Part shown: positions 1 to 63,468 of the stretch, one piece after another
Position numbering within the stretch: position 1 is the first letter of the stretch
Layout of the letters: each line of letters starts with the position of its first letter
From: Adineta vaga
Taxonomy: Eukaryota > Animalia > Rotifera
Direction: 5' to 3'
Length of the DNA stretch: 64,000 nucleotides
Assembly: GCA_021613535.1 (NCBI GenBank)
Contig: CP075494.1
Location: 4,030,001-4,094,000 of the forward strand
Made by a program: the position numbers and the translations under genes
Notes under the pieces: generated by a model
Databases searched by the model: none
What the model saw: only the letters and a program-made list of their open reading frames with translations
Told to the model about the DNA's origin: nothing

Positions 1-1275
1 TGTAAAAAACGGGGAGATATCCGTGGAAAAAAGATGTTCAACGAATAGAATACATATATATAGTATTTTGTAGTATCTGTTGTGAGCCGCCAAACAATAT
101 ATATAAAAGTACTTCCAAGTGATGTATATACATGTGTATGTAAAACAAGTTGTGCAAATTTTTTGTTGGCAACAGTTGCACTTTTAAATAATGTAATTGT
201 AAAGAAATGTGAATATGAATACTGAAATATTCTTCTCATTGTTCACATTGACACTTGAGGAATGAAGATTCAATGAAAATTTTAAAATAATTGTCTGTAA
301 AGCAAATATTGAGGGTGGATGTGGGCGAAGACAATAACGATATCCACACCTACACCCTCAAGATGGTATGTTACTGATTTAGAGAGAGATAATAGATGAA
401 ATAGAATATTGACAGAATTAGATACATTTGGATTTGACAACAGAACATGTCTTCGTGATTATTAGAATAAAGAATTTTTTTTAAAATATACAAATCATAA
501 AAACGCATGATTTCTTACAATCAACAAGTGATAAAATCATTTGATAATAAACTGTAACATATAAAGAACATTGAGAGATATTCATCAGTATAAATAGTGA
601 TCGTACTAAGATAGAAGTAGATTTTCTCTCAGACTATGTGACGTGAGAAATGTTATTTGCCCGCAAAACGTGTCATTTGTTCCGTTAGTCTCACTATTTT
701 TACTTTTTACCAAACTATAATCATGATTTATATTCCATTCGAATTTGAAGCACGTTCCAATGTATTTATTAGCTCAAATCCTTTTTTAGTTTTTTATTTG
801 AATCAGAAATTCTATCGATTGTTTTTATTTACTCATATTGTAGCTGTTAAAAGGGCGTAGTCATAATAGTTGAATCATTGTATAAGATCAAAAAATAATT
901 TTATGACTAACTCTCACTCTAATTAATGAAGAAGAAACTCAAATTTTAACGATTATTTCAATTAAAATCAATTATTTTTGTCATCAAACATCATCTTGTA
1001 ATTGTACTATGTTGTTTTTTTCTCTTTTTGAATATATCAATGTATATTCTGACGCAGGTAAACGAAAAGAATAAGTCACGTGGTATAAATATAAACATTT
1101 AAACTACCATTATTTACGCTTGACTAGTTTTGAGAGAAAATGTAATCGATACCGAAAAAAAAGAATGATATTTTTCATTTATTTATGATCAATATTACAA
1201 ATCAAAATTCTAAAAGTAAGTTTTTTGGTGAAAGATTAAATTTTTAGTGTAAATATCAAGCTATCAATCGATAAA

Positions 1276-5360: not shown

Positions 5361-5806
5361 GATTTGTTGTTGTTGTTCTTCTTCTTCTTCTATCTGCTTC
5401 ACACAATAACAACGGCTTAAATAGAACACGACAACGCGTTCTTTTACTTCAATGAGTCATCTCAACAATCTTTATCAAAATATCCATATAAGGTAATATA
5501 GATCCGATGACGGTTTGTGGAATTGTCAGTGTGACTAATCTAACAAAAAACTTAAATATCAATATACAAAGGATAATAGTGGCACATGGAAAGGGTAGAT
5601 TAGATCTGCTAACGTGTATTTTAATCAAGGGCGTGTAAGCCAATTGGCTGCGTTACAACCAGCGACGTCTATTTCTCTATCTATCAGCACATCGTTTGTA
5701 TTAAGCTGTTTCAAAATAGTAGTCTTGAATATTTATTAAAGATTATAGAAACAAGCACGAAGGATATTAAATATAATATCAATTTACTTTATTCGTTCCT
5801 ATGTAT

Positions 5807-6600
5807 TTATCCATTAGATTGTGACAAATCTATTCCTGTCGAATCATTCTCCAACTGGTTTTCCAATATTGTGGGCAAAAGCACTGTGTAGAATGTACCA
5901 GTAATAGGATACGATGCACTTCCCAATAAGCTTAAATATTACTTTTTTGCATCACTTGGTATACGAATGTGAAAAATGTCTGGATCATTAGTGGAATATA
6001 TGATATTACAGTTTAGTAAACATTAGACAGCATGTTTCCATAATAGACTTGATTTGTCCAAGCACGAACCGGAACGGCCGAGATTAAAGCACTGAGAATC
6101 GGCGTTGAAACAATAAGTTCAAAGATATTGCTAAAGGAAATAGTGTACCGTTGAGATGGATGAGTGGCAAGCTGGTTGAACGCTACATTATTAGTAGCAA
6201 TACCAGCAATGATATTAGTTGTGAAAAGGTGACTTTCTAGTTCGTGAAGACGTGATGTAGTTGCTATATCTGGAGCAGTGGAGAATACAACTACGACTCG
6301 AAGTCGACCACGACATTTTTCCCAACATAAAGTGTTGAAGGTTTTAATTCAGAAGTTATGTGTATTGTGCTAGATCTAAGCTTGATTTCATCGCTGAAGA
6401 CGAAGTTGTTCCGAACGGTAGAACTTTTTGTACAGCTGATTTTCCACCAAAGAAGTAAATACCAAATTGAGGACTTGAATCAGCTGGACTCAAATCAGTA
6501 GCAATGTTATTTAAAACGATTATTTTCATTTGATTGAATTGAAGAAAAGATAAAGATATGAACTGTGTACATCAACTAGCATCCATAGATCTACACCTTT
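5807..6600 (-). pseudogene. Decayed von Willebrand factor A (VWA) domain gene
   Basis: Manual minus-strand translation: DLWMLVD...FNQMK..LNNIATDL...QFGIYFFG...VLPF, then RVVVVFST...IIAGIATNNVAFNQLATHPSQRYTISFSNIFEL; interrupted by stops and frameshifts; absent from the ORF track. Confidence 0.6.
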
Positions 6601-6898
6601 CCTGTTTAGAGGATTAGTATACGTTCGTAGTGGTGGAACTGTCTCTACTAAAACAATTGCGAGAAGAAGAAAAACAATACGACAGATAGTCAACATATTG
6701 TGTAATGCTTACAGTTAAGAAATTATAAAATGTTTCTAATTTATAGTGCAGTTTATTATATGAGATAAATATAAAGATAACAAAATGTTTTTTTTTTCAT
6801 CTAAGAAGAAGAGCAAAGAAAAATGAAATCTTTTGTAGACGATAATGATAGAAGTTAGAACTAATGACAGCATCAAAAATAAAAATCTTTGTCTTGCT

Positions 6899-23460: not shown

Positions 23461-24748
23461 TTAATTGCCTATTTTTTCGCCGCCAGTGATAAGGATTTTG
23501 CCGGAATGGAGTAGAGTTGCCGTATGTGATGCACGTTTTATCGACAGTTTTCCAGAAGACTTCCATATACTCGTTAATGGATCATAAATTTCAGAAGTAT
23601 CCAAATAACCGGTACCTCCATAACCAGCAGTAGAAAGAATTTTACCTGAACTAAGCAGCGTTGTAGTATGCGAAGAACGTGAAGTTGTCATGCTATTTGT
23701 ATGATTCCATTTTCCTGTTGTTGGATCATAAATTTCACAACTAGACAAAAAATTAGTATCACCGACACCTCCGCTTACAAGAACTTGACCAGAAGGAAGC
23801 AGAATTGAAGAATGAAATCGACGTGCTATTGCTAAACTTGCAAGTGGATTCCATTCATTTGTTGTTGGATCATATACTTCTGTACTAGCCGAATACTTAG
23901 CTGATTGAATTCCACCAGTAACAAGAACCTGTCCTGAGCTGAGCAGAGTTGCATCAGAATAATAACGTGGTATGGGGCCCATGCTCGCGAGAGAGTTCCA
24001 TTGTCCCGTTAATGGATCATATACTTCAGAACGAGATGCATCACTAGTGACCAGAACTTTGCCTGACTTGAGCAAAGTTGCAGAATGACTAGATCGTGCT
24101 ATTGTCATATTTCCAGTAAGACTCCACTTATCTGTTATTGGATCATATATTTCACAACTAGTTAGAGTATTCAAACCAAAGGTAGTACCACCCGTAACAA
24201 GCACTTTACCAGAATTAAGTAAAGTTAAAGTATGGAAAGCACGTGATGTATGCATGCTTTCAGCAGTGGACCATTGACCGGTGGATGGATCATATATTTC
24301 ACAGTGAGTCATGTAACCAGTATTTGTTTCGCCACCAGCAACAAGGACTTTACCTGAATTGAGTATAGTTGCAGCATGAGCTTCTCGTGTTTCTGCCATG
24401 CTTCCAGTAACATTCCATGCATCCAGCGATGGATCATAGATTTCAGAAATGGCAATAGCATTGGCTGATTTGTAGCCACTGACAACTTTGCGTAAACTGA
24501 ATTGTGTTGCAGCATGAACATGACTATTCGATCGTCCTTAATAAAAGAAAAACATATTTCCCTATCTACGGAGTCAATATACATACATACCTGATTCCAC
24601 TTCATTGCAAGTACTATAAAACACGATAAATTTCAAATTTTTAGAAAAAAATATATGATAATTAATAAAAGCAGGTTTCTTTTTGGTGTATAGGTACTTA
24701 CATGCAAAATAATATAAAAAGCGAAAGAAGATAATATATTACCATCAT
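23461..24748 (-). CDS. Secreted Kelch-repeat beta-propeller (bacterial-type Kelch), 381 aa
   Basis: Exons 24748-24702, 24613-24591 and 24536-23461 are in frame; signal peptide MMVIYYLLSLFILFC; about 7 repeats of R..HTATLL.SGKVLV.GG....SCEIYDP.T..W. Confidence 0.85.
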
Positions 24749-29138: not shown

Positions 29139-30188
29139 TCAAAAAGGTAACGGTTGAATTCCACTGATAGCTGCATTACACAACGATCCAAAGCATGAAG
29201 AACGAAATAAATGACATAGATCAGTATTTGTTTTTGCTCGTGGTTCTGGCATAGTGGTTGATTCAAACCCAAGAATAATATGCCAAAGAAATTCCATGGC
29301 ACCACCAAATGTTTTCAATAAATTAGTTCCTGGAATTTCTCGATCACGAGGATTAGTACAATATGGTTGAATACTTGCATTGTAGAGTGTCGACCATTGT
29401 TCATATGTATAATGATGAATACGTTCTTTTCTCACATAAAACTGTGCACAACACATCGTCGAATAGGTACTCATATCTTTTCGAATGTGATTCGTTGGAT
29501 TTAATTGTAATTCTCCATCGAAATCAAGTAAACCTAATAGACGTACGGCACATTTATATATAAATGTAATATCATCAACTGGATCAGGAATTCCAGCAAT
29601 CCAAGGTCGATTACCAATCCAAATATTATTCACATTTGCATAAAAAACATCATCACGAATACATTGTGCTGCTTCAATTGGATAGAGTCCATGTTTTTCG
29701 GGTTTTCCATGAATAAATAACATTTTATCAGGTAGATCATGATAAAAGTCATAAATAAACTTCAAATATACCCCTGCTTCTTCGTGAACATTTTGACAAT
29801 AAGGCCAATTGAATGGAGGTTTCGATTCAGGATCAAATCGTTGATAGAGATATATATCATATGGTCGAGATGGACTCGTATTAAAGATATCTAAACCTTG
29901 TTGTAACCAAAGTGGCCAAGTAGATTTCTTATACCAATCGATCTCTCGATACATTGCAGGAATAATTACAAGACGATTTGTTCGCCATCTACTTTCTTTC
30001 AAAGTCGAATTTGACAATGAGGATCTGTTTGATGAAATTGAAAAGAATTTTGAAGATAGAGGAAATATTATCGTTCGATAATCTCGATAATTCGAAAAGA
30101 ATAGTAGAAAAGCACCAGATAACAAACAGAAAACGGTAAATACAGTGATTTCACTAAACGAAATCAATCGAATAAAGACAATCTTCAT
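29139..30188 (-). CDS. DUF3431-family type II membrane protein (putative glycosyltransferase-like)
   Basis: N-terminal TM; EAGVYLKFIYDFYHDLPDKMLFIHG, CCAQFYVRKERI, EFLWHIILG; intronless. Confidence 0.8.
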   Translation of the reverse strand: MKIVFIRLISFSEITVFTVFCLLSGAFLLFFSNYRDYRTIIFPLSSKFFSISSNRSSLSNSTLKESRWRTNRLVIIPAMYREIDWYKKSTWPLWLQQGLDIFNTSPSRPYDIYLYQRFDPESKPPFNWPYCQNVHEEAGVYLKFIYDFYHDLPDKMLFIHGKPEKHGLYPIEAAQCIRDDVFYANVNNIWIGNRPWIAGIPDPVDDITFIYKCAVRLLGLLDFDGELQLNPTNHIRKDMSTYSTMCCAQFYVRKERIHHYTYEQWSTLYNASIQPYCTNPRDREIPGTNLLKTFGGAMEFLWHIILGFESTTMPEPRAKTNTDLCHLFRSSCFGSLCNAAISGIQPLPF

Positions 30189-30679
30189 GCAAAGAAAGAC
30201 ATTACTGACCGATTTGTAAGACAATTCATTGTGATTCAAATAGAACAATTATCATCATTATTTTGTTTTACTCCAACATTGTTCGTTTTAATTTCTATAA
30301 CTATTATTCATGTAACGATGAAAAACGAGCATGAGAAGAAAAAAATGTCGACATGTTTACATAACAAATGAAAAATAAAACTATAGCATTCATTCAAAAA
30401 TCCGTTTCATCAGTAAGTAGAAGAAAAAATTCGAACGATTTTTTTTTCGATTCTTTCTGCCTTCAATGGTTGTTTACATATTAAACGTAACAAACGATTA
30501 TGTCTGTACAATATATAGTTTTACCAATATTGAATAGGAAATATATCTATTTCGTATGTAAAATATTTTGAGTGAAAATTTTGTTTCTTATTCAGTTTAT
30601 TATGCTTGTATAAATGGACAATAAACATACAAAACAATATCTCATATCTATTCTCCTGCTAATTCTTTTTATAATATAA

Positions 30680-31050
30680 ATAAAGCAATCATAATCAAAA
30701 ATAGTGATATATTAACAAATGCAAACGTAATATGAAAATCCTATGAAAATAAAATTTGCATCAGGAATACCATAAGTACTACTAAAATAGATACAATGAT
30801 AACTATTCGATGGGCCATTCGTAATTCTTTTTGTACCTGAAATAAATCGCTGGCACACACTTCACGTTTATTCACCTTTTTAACATAACGAACTAATTTG
30901 AAATAGATAAATATGACGATATTGGTTAGTATCATCTATATAGAATTGAGACTAAGTAAAACTAGATTGTTTCAAGTATAAAAATATGTCATTCGTTATT
31001 TGTAGTATTGATTTGAACATCCAATCTAAAGGAAAACCATGAAAATATTT
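30680..31050 (-). pseudogene. GPCR remnant (TM4-TM7), paralogous to 17768-18694
   Basis: IYFKLVRYVKKVNKR...QKELRMAHRIVIIV versus IYYKLIQYVKEMSKR...ERELKMVRRTIIIV; contains stops and lacks the 5' half. Confidence 0.7.
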
Positions 31051-34000
31051 GTTTTCATTTAAATGGTTCTCTATATACCTTCTGATATAAATTGAAAATA
31101 TAGCAAGACCTGTTATTGTTATCATTAATAGTATACAGATGAGAATAATCTTCAAAGAACATTGAAATGATGAATGTTCAACGTGTTTATCAGGCATTTC
31201 TATCGAAGAAATCTGTTGAACAGGATGTTTTCGTTTCTTACGAGATTGATAAATTTTGAATATAATCTGTACGATTGTAGGACATACCCATTGAAGAACG
31301 ATTGTTAAACCACCTTCAAGACCAAGTATGAGAGTTATTGTATAGAGTAAATTAAAATGTTGAATATAAGTATATGAACATAATAGTGGTGAACATTGTT
31401 GAAAATACGATGAATAATTAATTGTTGTTGTCCATTGTTCAACAAAGAGATCATCGATAAGTTTGTTAATAGTTGTATTTATCGAAAATCGACTTGCCGT
31501 TGTTGAAAGTGGCTTTGAAGAATTGATATGATTCGTATATTGTTGAATAAGATTCAGACATGTTTGATCGTAAAAACATTCAAGAGTTGAAACAAGAAAT
31601 GATTCACTTGGTGTACAACCCATTTTTAAACCTTTAATTGGAATCAATTTCAAAGGATTCATTTGAATGAAATTCGCTTGAGTAGTACAATTTGAATGTA
31701 ATCCACAAGAACATTGTTCATCGTAGATAAGAGCTTGAGTTGGTGCATAACTTCCGTAAGGATCAGCCCAAGGTACAATATATTCAAAATTCGTTCCATA
31801 CATTGATATAATCGCATTTCCATGATTGACACTACGAATTAAATAGAATAGACGAGCGAATGTATTTGATGCAATTGGTTGACTTCGTTCGATTAATGAA
31901 TCAAGACGTTTATTGAAAGTTTCTTCTGAGAGAAGTTGAGTTGTGACTAATAAAGAAGAAAGAATTTGTTCAATAGAATCCTTTACTGTTTGTATGGAAA
32001 GTTTGCATAAGCCAGTCAGAAATTGTAGATGAGCAGAAAGAAAACGACGATAATCGTTTTGTACGTAAGTAGAAAGATTAGACATAAGACTGTTAGTAAG
32101 ATCAATTCGCCATTGATCCGATGCAAACGAACTCGAACAGATCTAAAAAGATTGGTAAGAATGACAAAACATGACGTTAAAAATATTTACCTGGTGAAAT
32201 ATTGGTTGAATATCAACAAATCGATCATATGGCGAAGCAATCAATGAACAAGAACATTCTAATTTATCTCCATAGATATCTTTGATATATTTATACTGAT
32301 AAAAAGATGGTCGATCAAATGTTTCTTTTATTGTTCGTGATTGAACGATCGTATATAAAATAAGAATAACAAAGCAAATACTAAGTAGAACAATATATAA
32401 ACGAGTAGCCCATCGGCCAAGATGTTGAGCAGTGGTTTGATCAATATTATTACCGAAATCTCGCATAAGAAATATATTTAGACTAACAAAAGTCTTATAC
32501 GACAGAGTAATTAAATTCTTAGCTTTCGTTTTCCATCGATCGGACAATGTACAATTTACATTAGCTCGTGATGGCTGTTGTTTTTTCGTGCATAATCCTC
32601 GTACATGGAAAATAAATTTGCCAAGATAAGGTGTAAGAAAATGTAATGAAACAGTTAAACCTCCAATCATCGACAATAATGTTATTAACACTCCGATCCT
32701 AGTTTTCGAACGAACTCTTTCAGAGTAAGTACAATGACTTGGTGCACATGAATTATAATATTTATCATATAACAACGATGGATTCCATTGTTCGATCATC
32801 ATATTTTTTACAATAGTTGAAATTGAAGTATTCGGAGGAAAACGATCTACTGCTGGATCATAAACAAGAGAACGAGTTTCAAACAATGATGGGTATGCTT
32901 CATATAGAGGGGATGCTTGTATCTTTGTAAGATTTAACATATTTGAGAGACAATTCGAATTTGAATAAAAACATTGAAGTGTTGAAAGAAATAAAGATTT
33001 AGTAGTAGTACAACTTCTCATAAAATCTGGTAGTACAGATATGAGACTATGATTATAGTCATGCTCTGGATTATATGTATTATTGTACATAGCACTGATA
33101 CTTTGACAATGTGGATCGTTCGCACATAGACATGTGTTCACTGTCGAATTCACAGTAACAACTTCCGGTAGACGGAATGTCAGCTAAAAACAAGAGAAAA
33201 CATAATTGTGTTTGATTTTAGATGCAAACCAAGGATTCGAAATGAGTATACCTCCAACCATTCATCACCGGTTGTTTCATTTGTTGCTATATGTACAAGT
33301 AAATTTTCATCATCTATATTCCAGAAAAGTACCACTGATCCTGTATAGGGTTGATCGACTTGTATTAGAAGATTTGCTGTTTCAACAAGAAGATCAAAAT
33401 AAGTAATTGTTGTATGATAGAATTGATTGAGAGTAGCATTCATTTGTATATTAAAATCCGTTTCGTTTAGAACATTTGATGCAACAAATGATTGTAGGAG
33501 AAAGTGACTGACAGCATTGTTTTTAGTTTTATTAGCTAGTTGGCAGAGATCAGATAATAATTGCAAATATCCATGAGCTTTATTACGCCAATCTACAGGA
33601 GCCCAAATCGATGAAAGTTCTTCCCATATCGAAATCCAATCGGGATCGATAAATTCACTTGAACATACTTTATGTAAAGTTGGACATAATGAAATGAATG
33701 TTTCATAAGGTATTGCCATATTAGTACATGAACATCTGAGTGTTTTCGAATGTAAGATTCGTAAATTAGTGTAAGTATTTAATGATGGATGTGATATAGT
33801 TTTTGTCACGATTTCCGTACTCAATGATGTAAAGAGTACAAGAACAAGAAATGAACCTAATGATATAGAAAACAAAAAGAAATCGATGATTTGAGCGAGA
33901 GAGAGAGAGAGAATAGCTTCTAATTAAATCACCATACCGCTAAGTAAAATTAGATAGAGACATGTGATAATTCTCTGTTGTTTGATATTGGATTTTGTTC

Positions 34001-35660
34001 GTTTATTTTTATCTTTAAATAAATTTAGTCGTGGAAGTGATTGATTAAGTTTGCGTATACGTTCCATGAAGGGTACTAAAAATTCAGGTGTTTGCAAGGT
34101 ACATCTGTAGAACAATCTTATTTTTTATAAGATGATAGGGTTACCTGAATCAACATTTGCGGTTTTTGTTTGCCATTTCAATGGAATTTTAACGAAAGTT
34201 AATGCGATCAAACGAAATACTAAAGTAAGACCACCATACAAACTGATTAAGAGAGCAAGTGCAAAAGAAAAGTTCATTGGATTAGCCGTTGTGTATGTGC
34301 AAAATGACGGTGCACATTCATCAAAATACTTGGAATAGTTAATTTTTGTTGACCATTCGTTAACGAATAGATCTCTTAAATGATTGTATACAGATATATT
34401 ATCATGTTCAGAATGTAGAACAACATTGGACCAATTGAATGATGTCTATATACAAAAATATTATCTCGAATAAATACCGAGACGAATCACTTTATATCAT
34501 GTTTTATACCTGATTAAGATTTGGAAAATATTCAGATAATAATGTAAGACATTCGATATCATACAAACAATCGAATGTGCTTGCGAGAATAGCTTCAATG
34601 GGAGTACACGCTCCATAGAAACCTTTGATCAGTGTGGTATTCGGTTCAGGTATAGACCATGCGTCATGAAATATATAATGTGAACTATTTGAAATTGAAA
34701 AGAAACCGGCTGCACTGATTGGATCTCCTCTACCACATACGGCGTTTATATCTGAAGGTGAATCATCATCGGTACCAGTGTCAAACTGTGTCGGTGTTTG
34801 GTAAGCAGCGAAGTAACCATTATGTGTTCTTATGGAAATAATGCTGTTTGTATTGAGAGCTGAAATTAGATAGTTTGATTGTGTCGTCGTTTTGAGATAG
34901 TTTAGATATGAGATGAGCGTAGTCGATGCGTTATTCTTAAAAAAATTGACAGTGCCATTAATTCGAGATTGAACTTGATTTTCCGGAAGAAGATAAATCG
35001 TGACAAACTGATTATTGTCAAGTTCTATTTGATTTTGCGAAATTGTATTTTGTGAAAGTAAACAAAAACTAGCCAGAAGTTTGAACTAAATGTAAAAAAG
35101 TTGAAAAGAGTTTTTGAACGTAATTTCTGATTTACCTGAGAACTGGCTGTTGTTCGAAAATCTAACGTTCCATATCTACTAGCATCTGCTAAATACAATG
35201 CTTCGATCCATTCTTTACTAACAAAAATACTCGAACAAACAGGATGAAATATGATTGAATTTGAAACAAAGATTTTAAACGGAATGGTAATTTTCGAACA
35301 TGAACATAAGAGTGTTTTCGGATGTTTGGTATAGAGTTCATAAAAACGATCAGGTGTAATATCAGATATTGTAATCGTTCGGGATTCTGACCTCAACAAA
35401 GCCATGTAAAAAAGAGTGTAAAGAGATGCTAAAAACGAGAAAAAGTTTTCAAATTTCGAGTATAAATATAAACGATTGTCTCAGTTACTTGAAAGAAGAA
35501 AAACATAGAGCCAAGTTGCATATTTTTGATATTTTAAAGCAGTTTTCGTATCCAGTGGTTGATCATGTTCATCGTCATACTCATCTTCTTCAGGCATGAA
35601 CAGATTGTAATTACACATGTGATTGGAAAGCCAACGGAAAACCCTTCTAGGTTGTTTCAT
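30952..35660 (-). CDS. 1422-aa membrane protein with three tandem TM-Cys-rich ectodomain-TM units (putative single-chain trimeric channel) plus a 7th TM
   Basis: Eight exons (35660-35489, 35428-35136, 35085-34510, 34445-34145, 34075-33938, 33856-33252, 33183-32191, 32142-30952) total 4269 nt, open throughout. Each unit has LY..LLS, L.CSC, H.(V/I)CSS.F, L...C.L, CT....L.ST..C.Y, .E.W....Y..Y...C.P..C.Y and GGLT. Confidence 0.85.
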
Positions 35661-61723: not shown

Positions 61724-63468
61724 TTAATTACGTAATAAAACACTGATTTCATTTGAACCAGCATTTGCGACAATAATATCAAGTTTATTATCATTATTTA
61801 CGTCGATCAACATAACTTGTGTAGGAGTATCCCCAACTAAGTAGTTCGTTTCATTTTGAAAGATACCATTGCCTGTGTTGAGATAAATACCGACATTGTT
61901 CACAGCCGCATTGGCAACAATAAGGTCAGGCTTATTATCACAATTTACATCGCCTATAGCTACGGAACGTGGATATGCACCAACTGAGCGAGTAATTTGG
62001 CTTAGAAAGGTACCATTACCTGCATTAAAAAGAATACTAATGTTGTTCGAATTAGAATTTATAGCAATAATATCAGATTTATTATCATTATTCAAATCGC
62101 CGACAGCTATTGAAATTACATAAGTGCCAATTGGATAAGTAATTTGATTCAGAAAAGTACCATTGCCCATATTGAGAAGAACACCAACATTAGATGAATT
62201 GGAGTTTCCAACGATAATATCAAGCTTATTATCATTGTCTACATCAATGACTTCTATGGCGATTGGCTGACTACCAACTGTATATACCGTTTGATTGAAA
62301 AAGGTTCCATTACCGATATTGATAAGAACTCCCACATTATTTGAATTATAATTGGCTACAATAATATCAGGTTTATTGTCGGCGTTAACATCAGCTACTA
62401 CTACTGAGAACGGATTTGTACCTACGGAATAAGTCGTTTGACTTAGAAAAGTTCCATTGCCTGCATTGAGAAGAACGCCAACATTGTTTGAATTATAGTT
62501 TGCTACGACAATATCTGGTAGATTGTCAAGGTTTACATCAACTGCCGTCACTGAACGTGGATACACACCAACTGAGTAAAATATTTCAGCCAGGAAGGTA
62601 CCATTACCTAGATTGAGACGAACACCGACATTGTTTGAATTATAGTTTGCTACGATCATATCGGGTTTATCGTCATTGTTAACGTCAAGTACTGCCATTG
62701 AATATGGGACCAATCCAGTCGAGTATGTAGGCTGACTAACAAACATAATATTGCAAGCTATAAAGAAAAAACAAAATACTGAGAATTTTTCCAAATTAAT
62801 GAATTGATAATTCAGTAAAGTGACCGTAACTTTTAAAGGAAGTGATTAGCAGTCAAATTGTTTTAAAATCTTGAAATCGTCGTAGGCATTTGAAAAAGGT
62901 TCTCTCATCAATCAGTATTTCTTCTAGTATCGAAATTTATTTTATTAATTTATGAACTGCAGTCTTTTATATCTGTTATTTAAGATTTTGTTAGCTATTC
63001 TGAATACGTTGATAGATACTAAATCACTTACCAGTTGTTGTTGTCAATGTACTAATTGTGGATGTTGTAGTCGATACTATTGTAAAGAAAAGTAGACGAT
63101 GATGTATTTCTAAATATATTCTATCAATACTAACTTTGTAGAGTTCGCATTCCAGATACGGTGATCATGCTAATAGTATCCACATCGATAGACATGTTTG
63201 TATTTTGATTCGATATATTAGTGAATAATTGACAATTCAAAGACGATCGATGAAAACTTGCTGCTTGGCATTGAATTTCATTTAAACAAGCAACTTGACA
63301 CTTGCGAACATCTAGTGTAGTAGTTGTCGTTAACGGTAAACAAGTTGTATTCGTACATTGAAATTGCCATCCACTCAGAACTGACATTGTCAATAAATGT
63401 TTATCTTGTGCAACTAATTGTACGATAAGACCAAACAAAATCACCATCGATATTCCTAACGAATTCAT
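61724..63468 (-). CDS. Secreted PAN/apple + FG-GAP/VCBS-repeat beta-propeller protein
   Basis: Signal peptide; KCQVACL....CQAASF.....CQLF; Thr-rich mini-exon; seven repeats of DVNND.KPDIIVAN..SNNVGVLLN.GNGTF; phase-1 introns. Confidence 0.85.

Follow-up and report, generated by a model that had tools for sequence, protein, structure and literature searches.

A 64,000-nucleotide stretch of the bdelloid rotifer Adineta vaga genome (assembly GCA_021613535.1, contig CP075494.1, positions 4,030,001 to 4,094,000; hereafter the window, to which all positions refer unless stated otherwise) contains on its minus strand one intact A. vaga gene of eight exons. From its sequence, the product is predicted to be a glycoprotein with seven transmembrane (TM) helices, composed of three diverged modules, each of which carries a disulfide-rich ectodomain of unmatched fold. 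The original prediction for this locus read the gene as three channel-like subunits, each with two TM helices, joined in one polypeptide, and placed them near the DEG/ENaC/ASIC and P2X channels. The features of the gene are listed in Table 1, where the helices are numbered along the whole chain; in the text, TM1 and TM2 denote the first and second helices of a unit.

Rebuilding the gene from the window gave a coding sequence of 4269 nucleotides (nt), which specifies 1422 amino acids (aa) without an internal stop, and seven introns of 48–81 nt, all bounded by GT..AG; the intact 8-exon open reading frame (ORF) first proposed is thus recovered at the same length. Intron 4 was set at 34144-34076 (69 nt), since a nearer AG leads to a stop, and intron 5 at 33937-33857 (81 nt), the alternative being an 18-nt 'intron' judged too short. 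With the borders so chosen, the TM helices align gap-free to those of the family. A 157-nt contig from run X7, whose RNA label is a guess, joins 34145 to 34075 and lacks precisely the 69 nt of intron 4, tying the end of unit 1 to the linker that precedes unit 2. Of the splice junctions, which were to be checked against RNA reads, that of intron 4 has read support, and the remaining ones have none. Contigs from runs X1–X3 (made in 2013), which we treated as DNA-like because they run through introns, show two kinds of departure from the window sequence: a compensated +1/-1 pair within linker 2 (32561-32571; aa 900-903), and 2-nt insertions or deletions at aa 1383 and 1413 of the C-terminal tail (window 30983/31072); these differences are probably allelic. 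The 34 listed coding differences comprise 12 synonymous and 22 non-synonymous allelic single-nucleotide polymorphisms, and the resulting ratio of non-synonymous to synonymous polymorphism (pN/pS) of about 0.5 indicates modest constraint.

Such a ratio, the 2-nt changes in the tail and read support at one junction of seven would also fit a pseudogene in decay, or three neighbouring paralogues, wrongly merged into one model. However, the frame is open through eight exons with short canonical introns, the supported junction is the very one that leads from unit 1 to unit 2, and units 2 and 3 both occupy exon 7 with no stop between them. Moreover, intron-free paralogues hold all three units in single ORFs of 1260–1369 aa, and annotated homologues share the layout. 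We consider a faulty merger highly improbable.

Each unit consists of a TM helix, a loop of about 320 aa rich in cysteines and N-glycosylation sites, and a second TM helix that carries the motif GGL. Judged from pairwise blastp comparisons (E 3.7e-31, 1.3e-44 and 3.3e-39; 24–30% identity over about 400 aa), the homology among the three units is far beyond chance, and a phase-1 intron following 'LLS' in TM1 is common to units 1 and 2 (introns 1 and 5), though not to unit 3; both features had been proposed at the outset. Lysine and arginine make up 15–25% of the linkers compared with 6–7% of the loops, whereas NxS/T sequons number 22 in the loops and two in the linkers. The loops contain 10, 13 and 12 cysteines, respectively, unit 1 being without two of the conserved ones. 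Because of the two splits and the loop cysteines, the N-terminus and the linkers are placed inside and the loops outside, which agrees with the basic cytoplasmic linkers described earlier. All three TM2 motifs of the original prediction, YGGLTLVF, IGGLTVSL and EGGLTIVL in units 1, 2 and 3, are present, but GGL lies within TM2 and not at its end. Likewise, its six helices are those of the units, but hydropathy yields seven in total: a further TM helix and a tail of 45 aa had been overlooked.

Table 1. Coordinates of the gene and of its predicted features (all on the minus strand)
Feature	Residues (aa)	Window positions	Basis or remarks
Whole gene		35660-30952	8 exons, 1422 codons + stop; splice model, GT..AG introns, no internal stop
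Exons 1-8		35660-35489, 35428-35136, 35085-34510, 34445-34145, 34075-33938, 33856-33252, 33183-32191, 32142-30952
Unit 1	32-449	34071..35567, exons 1-5	Family-profile envelope, hydropathy, tree with unit 1s of 10 relatives (support 100)
TM1, unit 1		35394-35516	Hydropathy
TM2, unit 1 (YGGLT)		34209-34271	Hydropathy
Cytoplasmic linker 1	427-482	33972..34208	25% K+R, 'LNLF' motif; crossed by intron 4
Unit 2	468-905	32554..34016, exons 5-7	Profile envelope, hydropathy, tree
TM3, unit 2		33828-33971, split by intron 5	Hydropathy
TM4, unit 2 (IGGLT)		32632-32694	Hydropathy
Cytoplasmic linker 2	880-954	32407..32631	'LNIF' motif; consensus motif precedes each TM1 in family alignment A2
Unit 3	938-1340	31201..32457, exons 7-8	Profile envelope, hydropathy, tree
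TM5, unit 3		32344-32406	Hydropathy
TM6, unit 3 (EGGLT)		31288-31350	Hydropathy
Seventh TM	1357-1377	31090-31152	Hydropathy 2.79
C-terminal tail (45 aa)		30955-31089	Follows seventh TM

Across the family, three modules per chain is the rule. A census took in the window model and 142 of the 150 representatives listed. Of these 143 proteins, 101 show three unit groups, all of them complete in 51, and more than three complete units occur in none; one broken model shows four fragments, and the shorter proteins are partial models. At paralogous loci in the A. vaga genome, exactly three tandem units on the same strand were found in 17 of 20 and four in none, and in the other three loci gaps of 1.2–3.4 kb interrupt the units or the units run off the fetched stretch. 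Rather than taking arbitrary values among homologues, the number of units per gene therefore has three as its ceiling, in line with what had been anticipated for this locus.

In the subfamily to which the window gene belongs, the first, second and third units form three parallel clades of 11 members, each with support of 100 (FastTree), and in comparisons with other proteins 128 of 150 units match best to a unit at their own position. The triplet was therefore inherited as a set. A different situation is seen in another branch, in P0148, P0162, P0170, P0171, P0214 and P0219, the three units of each of which are closest to one another (41–67% identity). Among the genomic paralogues, unit pairs are 50–75% identical in L019:4272-7937 (+), and in L015:2789-6821 (+) units 1 and 2 are 68% identical and unit 3 reaches 94–96% to them where 77 residues align; a crude translation of this third unit contains many stops. 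Either gene conversion or renewed triplication would explain such likeness among the units of one chain, the number three being kept either way: since units that are 50–96% identical still number three, the number has been kept even though the units were homogenised or re-made.

Members of the family share a mean identity of 25%. Conservation is highest at the cysteines, at a wrist-like CxPxxCxY that precedes TM2, at S/T-T-R-x-Y where TM1 starts, at LNLF in each cytoplasmic linker, and at GL-x-GGL in TM2 with R/K seven residues later. In the subfamily of the window gene, the residue before GG is Y in 11 of 11 first units and I in 11 of 11 second units, and is Q, H, Y or E in third units; the window gene has E.

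A search with exon 8 retrieved hundreds of proteins, of which all that carry a species name come from Adineta steineri, A. ricciae, A. vaga or Rotaria. Every named family member is thus a bdelloid, and the annotations read 'unnamed' or 'hypothetical'. The exhaustive search gave 2241 clusters at 50% identity, and a first look at the A. vaga genome (100.8 Mb in six contigs) gave at least 920 candidates, 105 of which were scored, with 106 matches listed at E<=1e-5; the window contains a single member, the gene described here. Family profile A1 matches all three of its units (E 1e-28 to 1e-113 per exon piece). Aligned with 50 full-length members, the gene shows three tandem units, each with a TM helix, the pattern CxC...HxxCSS...C-rich loop...CxPxxCxY and a TM helix with GGL, and its unit 3 is nearest to the third units of Adineta and Rotaria proteins (55–66% identity). 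Pfam recognized no domain in any of the eight exons or in five homologues, returning sub-threshold noise only, a search of the ESM Atlas by features returned Rotifera clusters only, and our literature search found no paper on the three-module family. The gene therefore belongs to a very large, undescribed bdelloid family with hundreds of genes.

Full-length members of this family occur in two forms: proteins of about 1200–1330 aa with six TM helices, and proteins that have a seventh TM helix and are extended at the C-terminus by as much as 900 aa. An FG-GAP propeller was detected in nine of ten extensions tested (E 1e-18 to 1e-52). The nearest relatives of the window gene (P0125, P0123, P0127 and others) have a propeller of about 450 aa after the seventh helix, and the topology would place this domain outside the cell. 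In the window, no propeller-like sequence was found 3' of the gene on the minus strand, and the 2-nt insertions or deletions seen in the DNA contigs make the tail look like an unconstrained leftover. The gene is thus a member of a branch from which the FG-GAP propeller has been lost, and the seventh helix is what is left of the longer form.

The sole FG-GAP ORF in the window lies 26 kb upstream on the same strand (61727-62845); it is full of FG-GAP-like repeats and is similar to the C-terminal propellers found in the long form of the family (phmmer E as low as 5e-67). No three-module units lie beside it within the window, and it may be a separate propeller gene. In the closest paralogue, L001, two ORFs at 5779-6792 (+) (G000:C5:~87900-88900) follow immediately after the third unit, where the seventh helix and the tail would be expected; by eye only, they look like a mariner/Tc1-type transposase.

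Structures were predicted for homologues of the window protein. A single unit of P0003 (59% identical to exon 8 in A1), modelled from a 142-unit alignment, reached a predicted local distance difference test score (pLDDT) of 91.4 and a predicted template modelling score (pTM) of 0.79, and shows, between two long TM helices, an ectodomain of mixed alpha/beta structure that includes a long helical hairpin. The three-unit homologue P0242 (1141 aa), modelled as a single chain by AlphaFold2, gave a pLDDT of 82.2 and a pTM of 0.75, a higher value than three units strung together independently would give, so that the units are predicted to pack into one compact body. When two units of P0125, a member of the window gene's clade, were separated and docked, the median interaction prediction score from aligned errors (ipSAE) over three runs was 0.55, while the best of three controls scored 0.00; the runs agreed in at least 78% of contacts, with a partner pLDDT of at least 74. 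The mark used for docking is reached by 51 of 78 solved complexes and by two of 108 mismatched pairs, and at ipSAE <=0.60 lie five of the 78 solved complexes and all four mismatches that pass (of 180, with harder ones counted).

Comparisons with known channels gave no relative. The Pfam family ASC (PF00858) matched none of the exons at E<=1 and none of five homologues at E<=10, and P2X_receptor (PF00864) matched neither the eight exons nor the five homologues, even at E<=10. Searching the PDB sequences with the 142-sequence profile A1 gave zero matches at E<=10. Foldseek found nothing in the PDB at E<=0.001 for either the unit model or the three-unit model, and nothing among the viral models of BFVD; its Nav/Cav rows for the three-unit model, with a TM-score of 0.06, are noise. 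An exhaustive VIA search of 48,161 chains with the unit model gave a best Z of 7.7, the rows aligning 47–100 residues, mostly the two long TM helices, and no ASIC, ENaC or P2X was among the 50 rows shown. By shape, the ESM Atlas returned Rotifera clusters only (TM-score 0.73–0.78), the next being Wzz and ERGIC (0.28), a likeness of topology only.

These results bear on the kinship first suggested, namely that the gene is a divergent DEG/ENaC/ASIC or P2X member concatenated three times. The shared topology of the subunits, the GG in TM2 and the matching trimeric number had spoken for it. However, the negative Pfam, Foldseek, VIA, ESM Atlas, BFVD and PDB-profile searches lead us to reject membership of both DEG/ENaC and P2X, the VIA alignments being confined to the TM hairpin. 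There is no HG motif before TM1 and no G/SxS filter in TM2, as was noted from the start, and TRxY and GL-x-GGLT are found instead. In Foldseek and VIA, the unit model showed neither the dolphin-shaped, beta-rich ectodomain of P2X nor a match to the palm, beta-ball, thumb and finger of ASIC. This kinship is close to refuted, and all that still links the gene to these channels is a similar topology and the shared number three.

Taken together, the product is most likely a sensor at the cell surface with a built-in pseudo-trimeric architecture, and would act as a channel or as a receptor. The three modules of the chain would pack side by side, with three ectodomain lobes outside, over a six-helix membrane bundle, and with the short basic linkers inside; we regard such a single-chain pseudo-trimer as probable. 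Its ectodomains would sense something extracellular, and the conserved helix bundle would relay the signal through the membrane, the opening of an ion path being the likeliest means. The ion path is suggested because no cytoplasmic signalling domain was found and because the membrane helices are among the most conserved parts. Known trimers of 2-TM subunits with large ectodomains, namely ASIC/ENaC, P2X and PAC, are ion channels. The conserved helices, the lack of a cytoplasmic domain and the polar residue in mid-membrane in unit 3 speak for a channel; the FG-GAP fusions, the helix-packing nature of GG and the lack of a channel-like fold speak against one. That the protein conducts ions is put forward tentatively. 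As a whole, a pseudo-trimer with sensing ectodomains and a helix bundle that opens an ion path seems to us the best explanation, albeit a tentative one with odds somewhat below even.

Several points weigh against this explanation. The models and the docking were made on homologues of the window's protein, and the two-unit docking of P0125 was graded 'weak support'. Pfam, the PDB profile, Foldseek and VIA gave no fold or sequence similarity to any channel. TM faces with Gly-Gly or other small residues also serve plain helix packing, and many relatives carry the extracellular FG-GAP propeller, a domain typical of adhesion or ligand-binding receptors. At the level of the gene, reads support one of the seven junctions and the polymorphism ratio implies modest constraint.

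It is possible, if somewhat doubtful, that the protein is instead a non-conducting pseudo-trimeric receptor, or an adhesion or recognition glycoprotein, whose variable ectodomains bind ligands, microbes or matrix. The helices would then only anchor the protein and hold the trimer, and any signalling would pass through partners on the basic linkers. In favour of such a protein is a family that has grown to hundreds of genes within one lineage and whose cysteine-rich, glycosylated loops diverge fast; the FG-GAP propellers fused to many relatives, the absence of a channel-like fold in Foldseek and VIA, and GG motifs suited to helix packing point the same way. However, few parts of the protein are as well conserved as the membrane helices and juxtamembrane motifs, which is rare for plain anchors, Pfam found no cytoplasmic signalling domain in the exons or in five homologues, and a polar or charged residue lies in the middle of TM2 in unit 3.

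The three 2-TM repeats per chain and their conserved helices also parallel a known pseudo-three-fold transporter, so that a transporter or lipid-handling protein with a tripartite six-helix bundle, such as those of the mitochondrial carrier family, has to be considered. It is improbable: no match to carriers was found in sequence or fold, the bulk of the mass lies in extracellular loops, which would be unusual for a carrier, and the size and variability of the family suit sensing better than transport. In a bolder form of the sensor explanation, the family, with its hundreds of genes, would be the main repertoire of environmental receptors (chemosensory or microbe-sensing) of bdelloids; its members would be ligand-gated ion channels of a new class, pseudo-trimeric within a single chain and with an ectodomain fold of their own, in which the fixed order of the units gives a built-in asymmetric pore. 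In all its parts together, we regard this as unlikely.

If the modules truly form a built-in trimer, the family would provide a naturally occurring single-chain form of an architecture for which known trimeric 2-TM channels use separate subunits. It would also represent a fold unseen in solved structures and used hundreds of times in one animal lineage, and a large, so far unrecognised bdelloid repertoire of receptors or channels. Ranging from heterotrimer-like genes with units 25–30% identical to nearly homotrimer-like ones (up to 75–96%), it would offer a natural test case for how subunit fusion fixes stoichiometry and asymmetry. The locus alone is smaller news: one more member, from a propeller-less branch.

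Two other ORFs on the minus strand of the window may be mentioned. The one at 29139-30248, the gene's downstream neighbour, encodes 369 aa that match DUF3431 (E 2e-14) and include a hydrophobic stretch in their N-terminal part; the ORF at 23461-24399 encodes a Kelch-repeat beta-propeller (Kelch_1, E 9e-46).

The closest known counterparts of the gene are its unnamed bdelloid relatives, for example I4U23_000188 of A. vaga (P0131), the 'Transmembrane protein' A0A815XH75 of A. ricciae (P0245) and A0A814JS41 of A. steineri (P0125), which resemble it in the three-unit layout, the cysteine pattern and the TRxY and GGL membrane motifs. The nearest of them continue to the FG-GAP propeller and have Q, Y or H before GG in unit 3, whereas the window gene ends 45 aa past the seventh helix and has E at that position. 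DEG/ENaC/ASIC, P2X and PAC (TMEM206) are likewise assembled from three subunits, each with a large disulfide-rich ectodomain between two TM helices; there, however, the subunits are separate chains, while here they form one, and no sequence or fold relation connects them. PAC (7ji3) aligned in VIA over 71 residues of the TM hairpin only (Z 6.3). The mitochondrial carriers also have three homologous 2-TM repeats in one chain, which form a pseudo-three-fold six-helix bundle, but their repeats are of about 100 aa with small matrix loops and they are transporters, in contrast with the extracellular domain of about 320 aa in each repeat here. The Mito_carr signature had no Pfam match in the eight exons or five homologues, and no fold match to carriers was found. 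The four-repeat Nav/Cav channels and the two-repeat TPC and K2P channels have another fold and another number of repeats, but they share with the protein described here the principle that fused subunits fix both stoichiometry and asymmetry.

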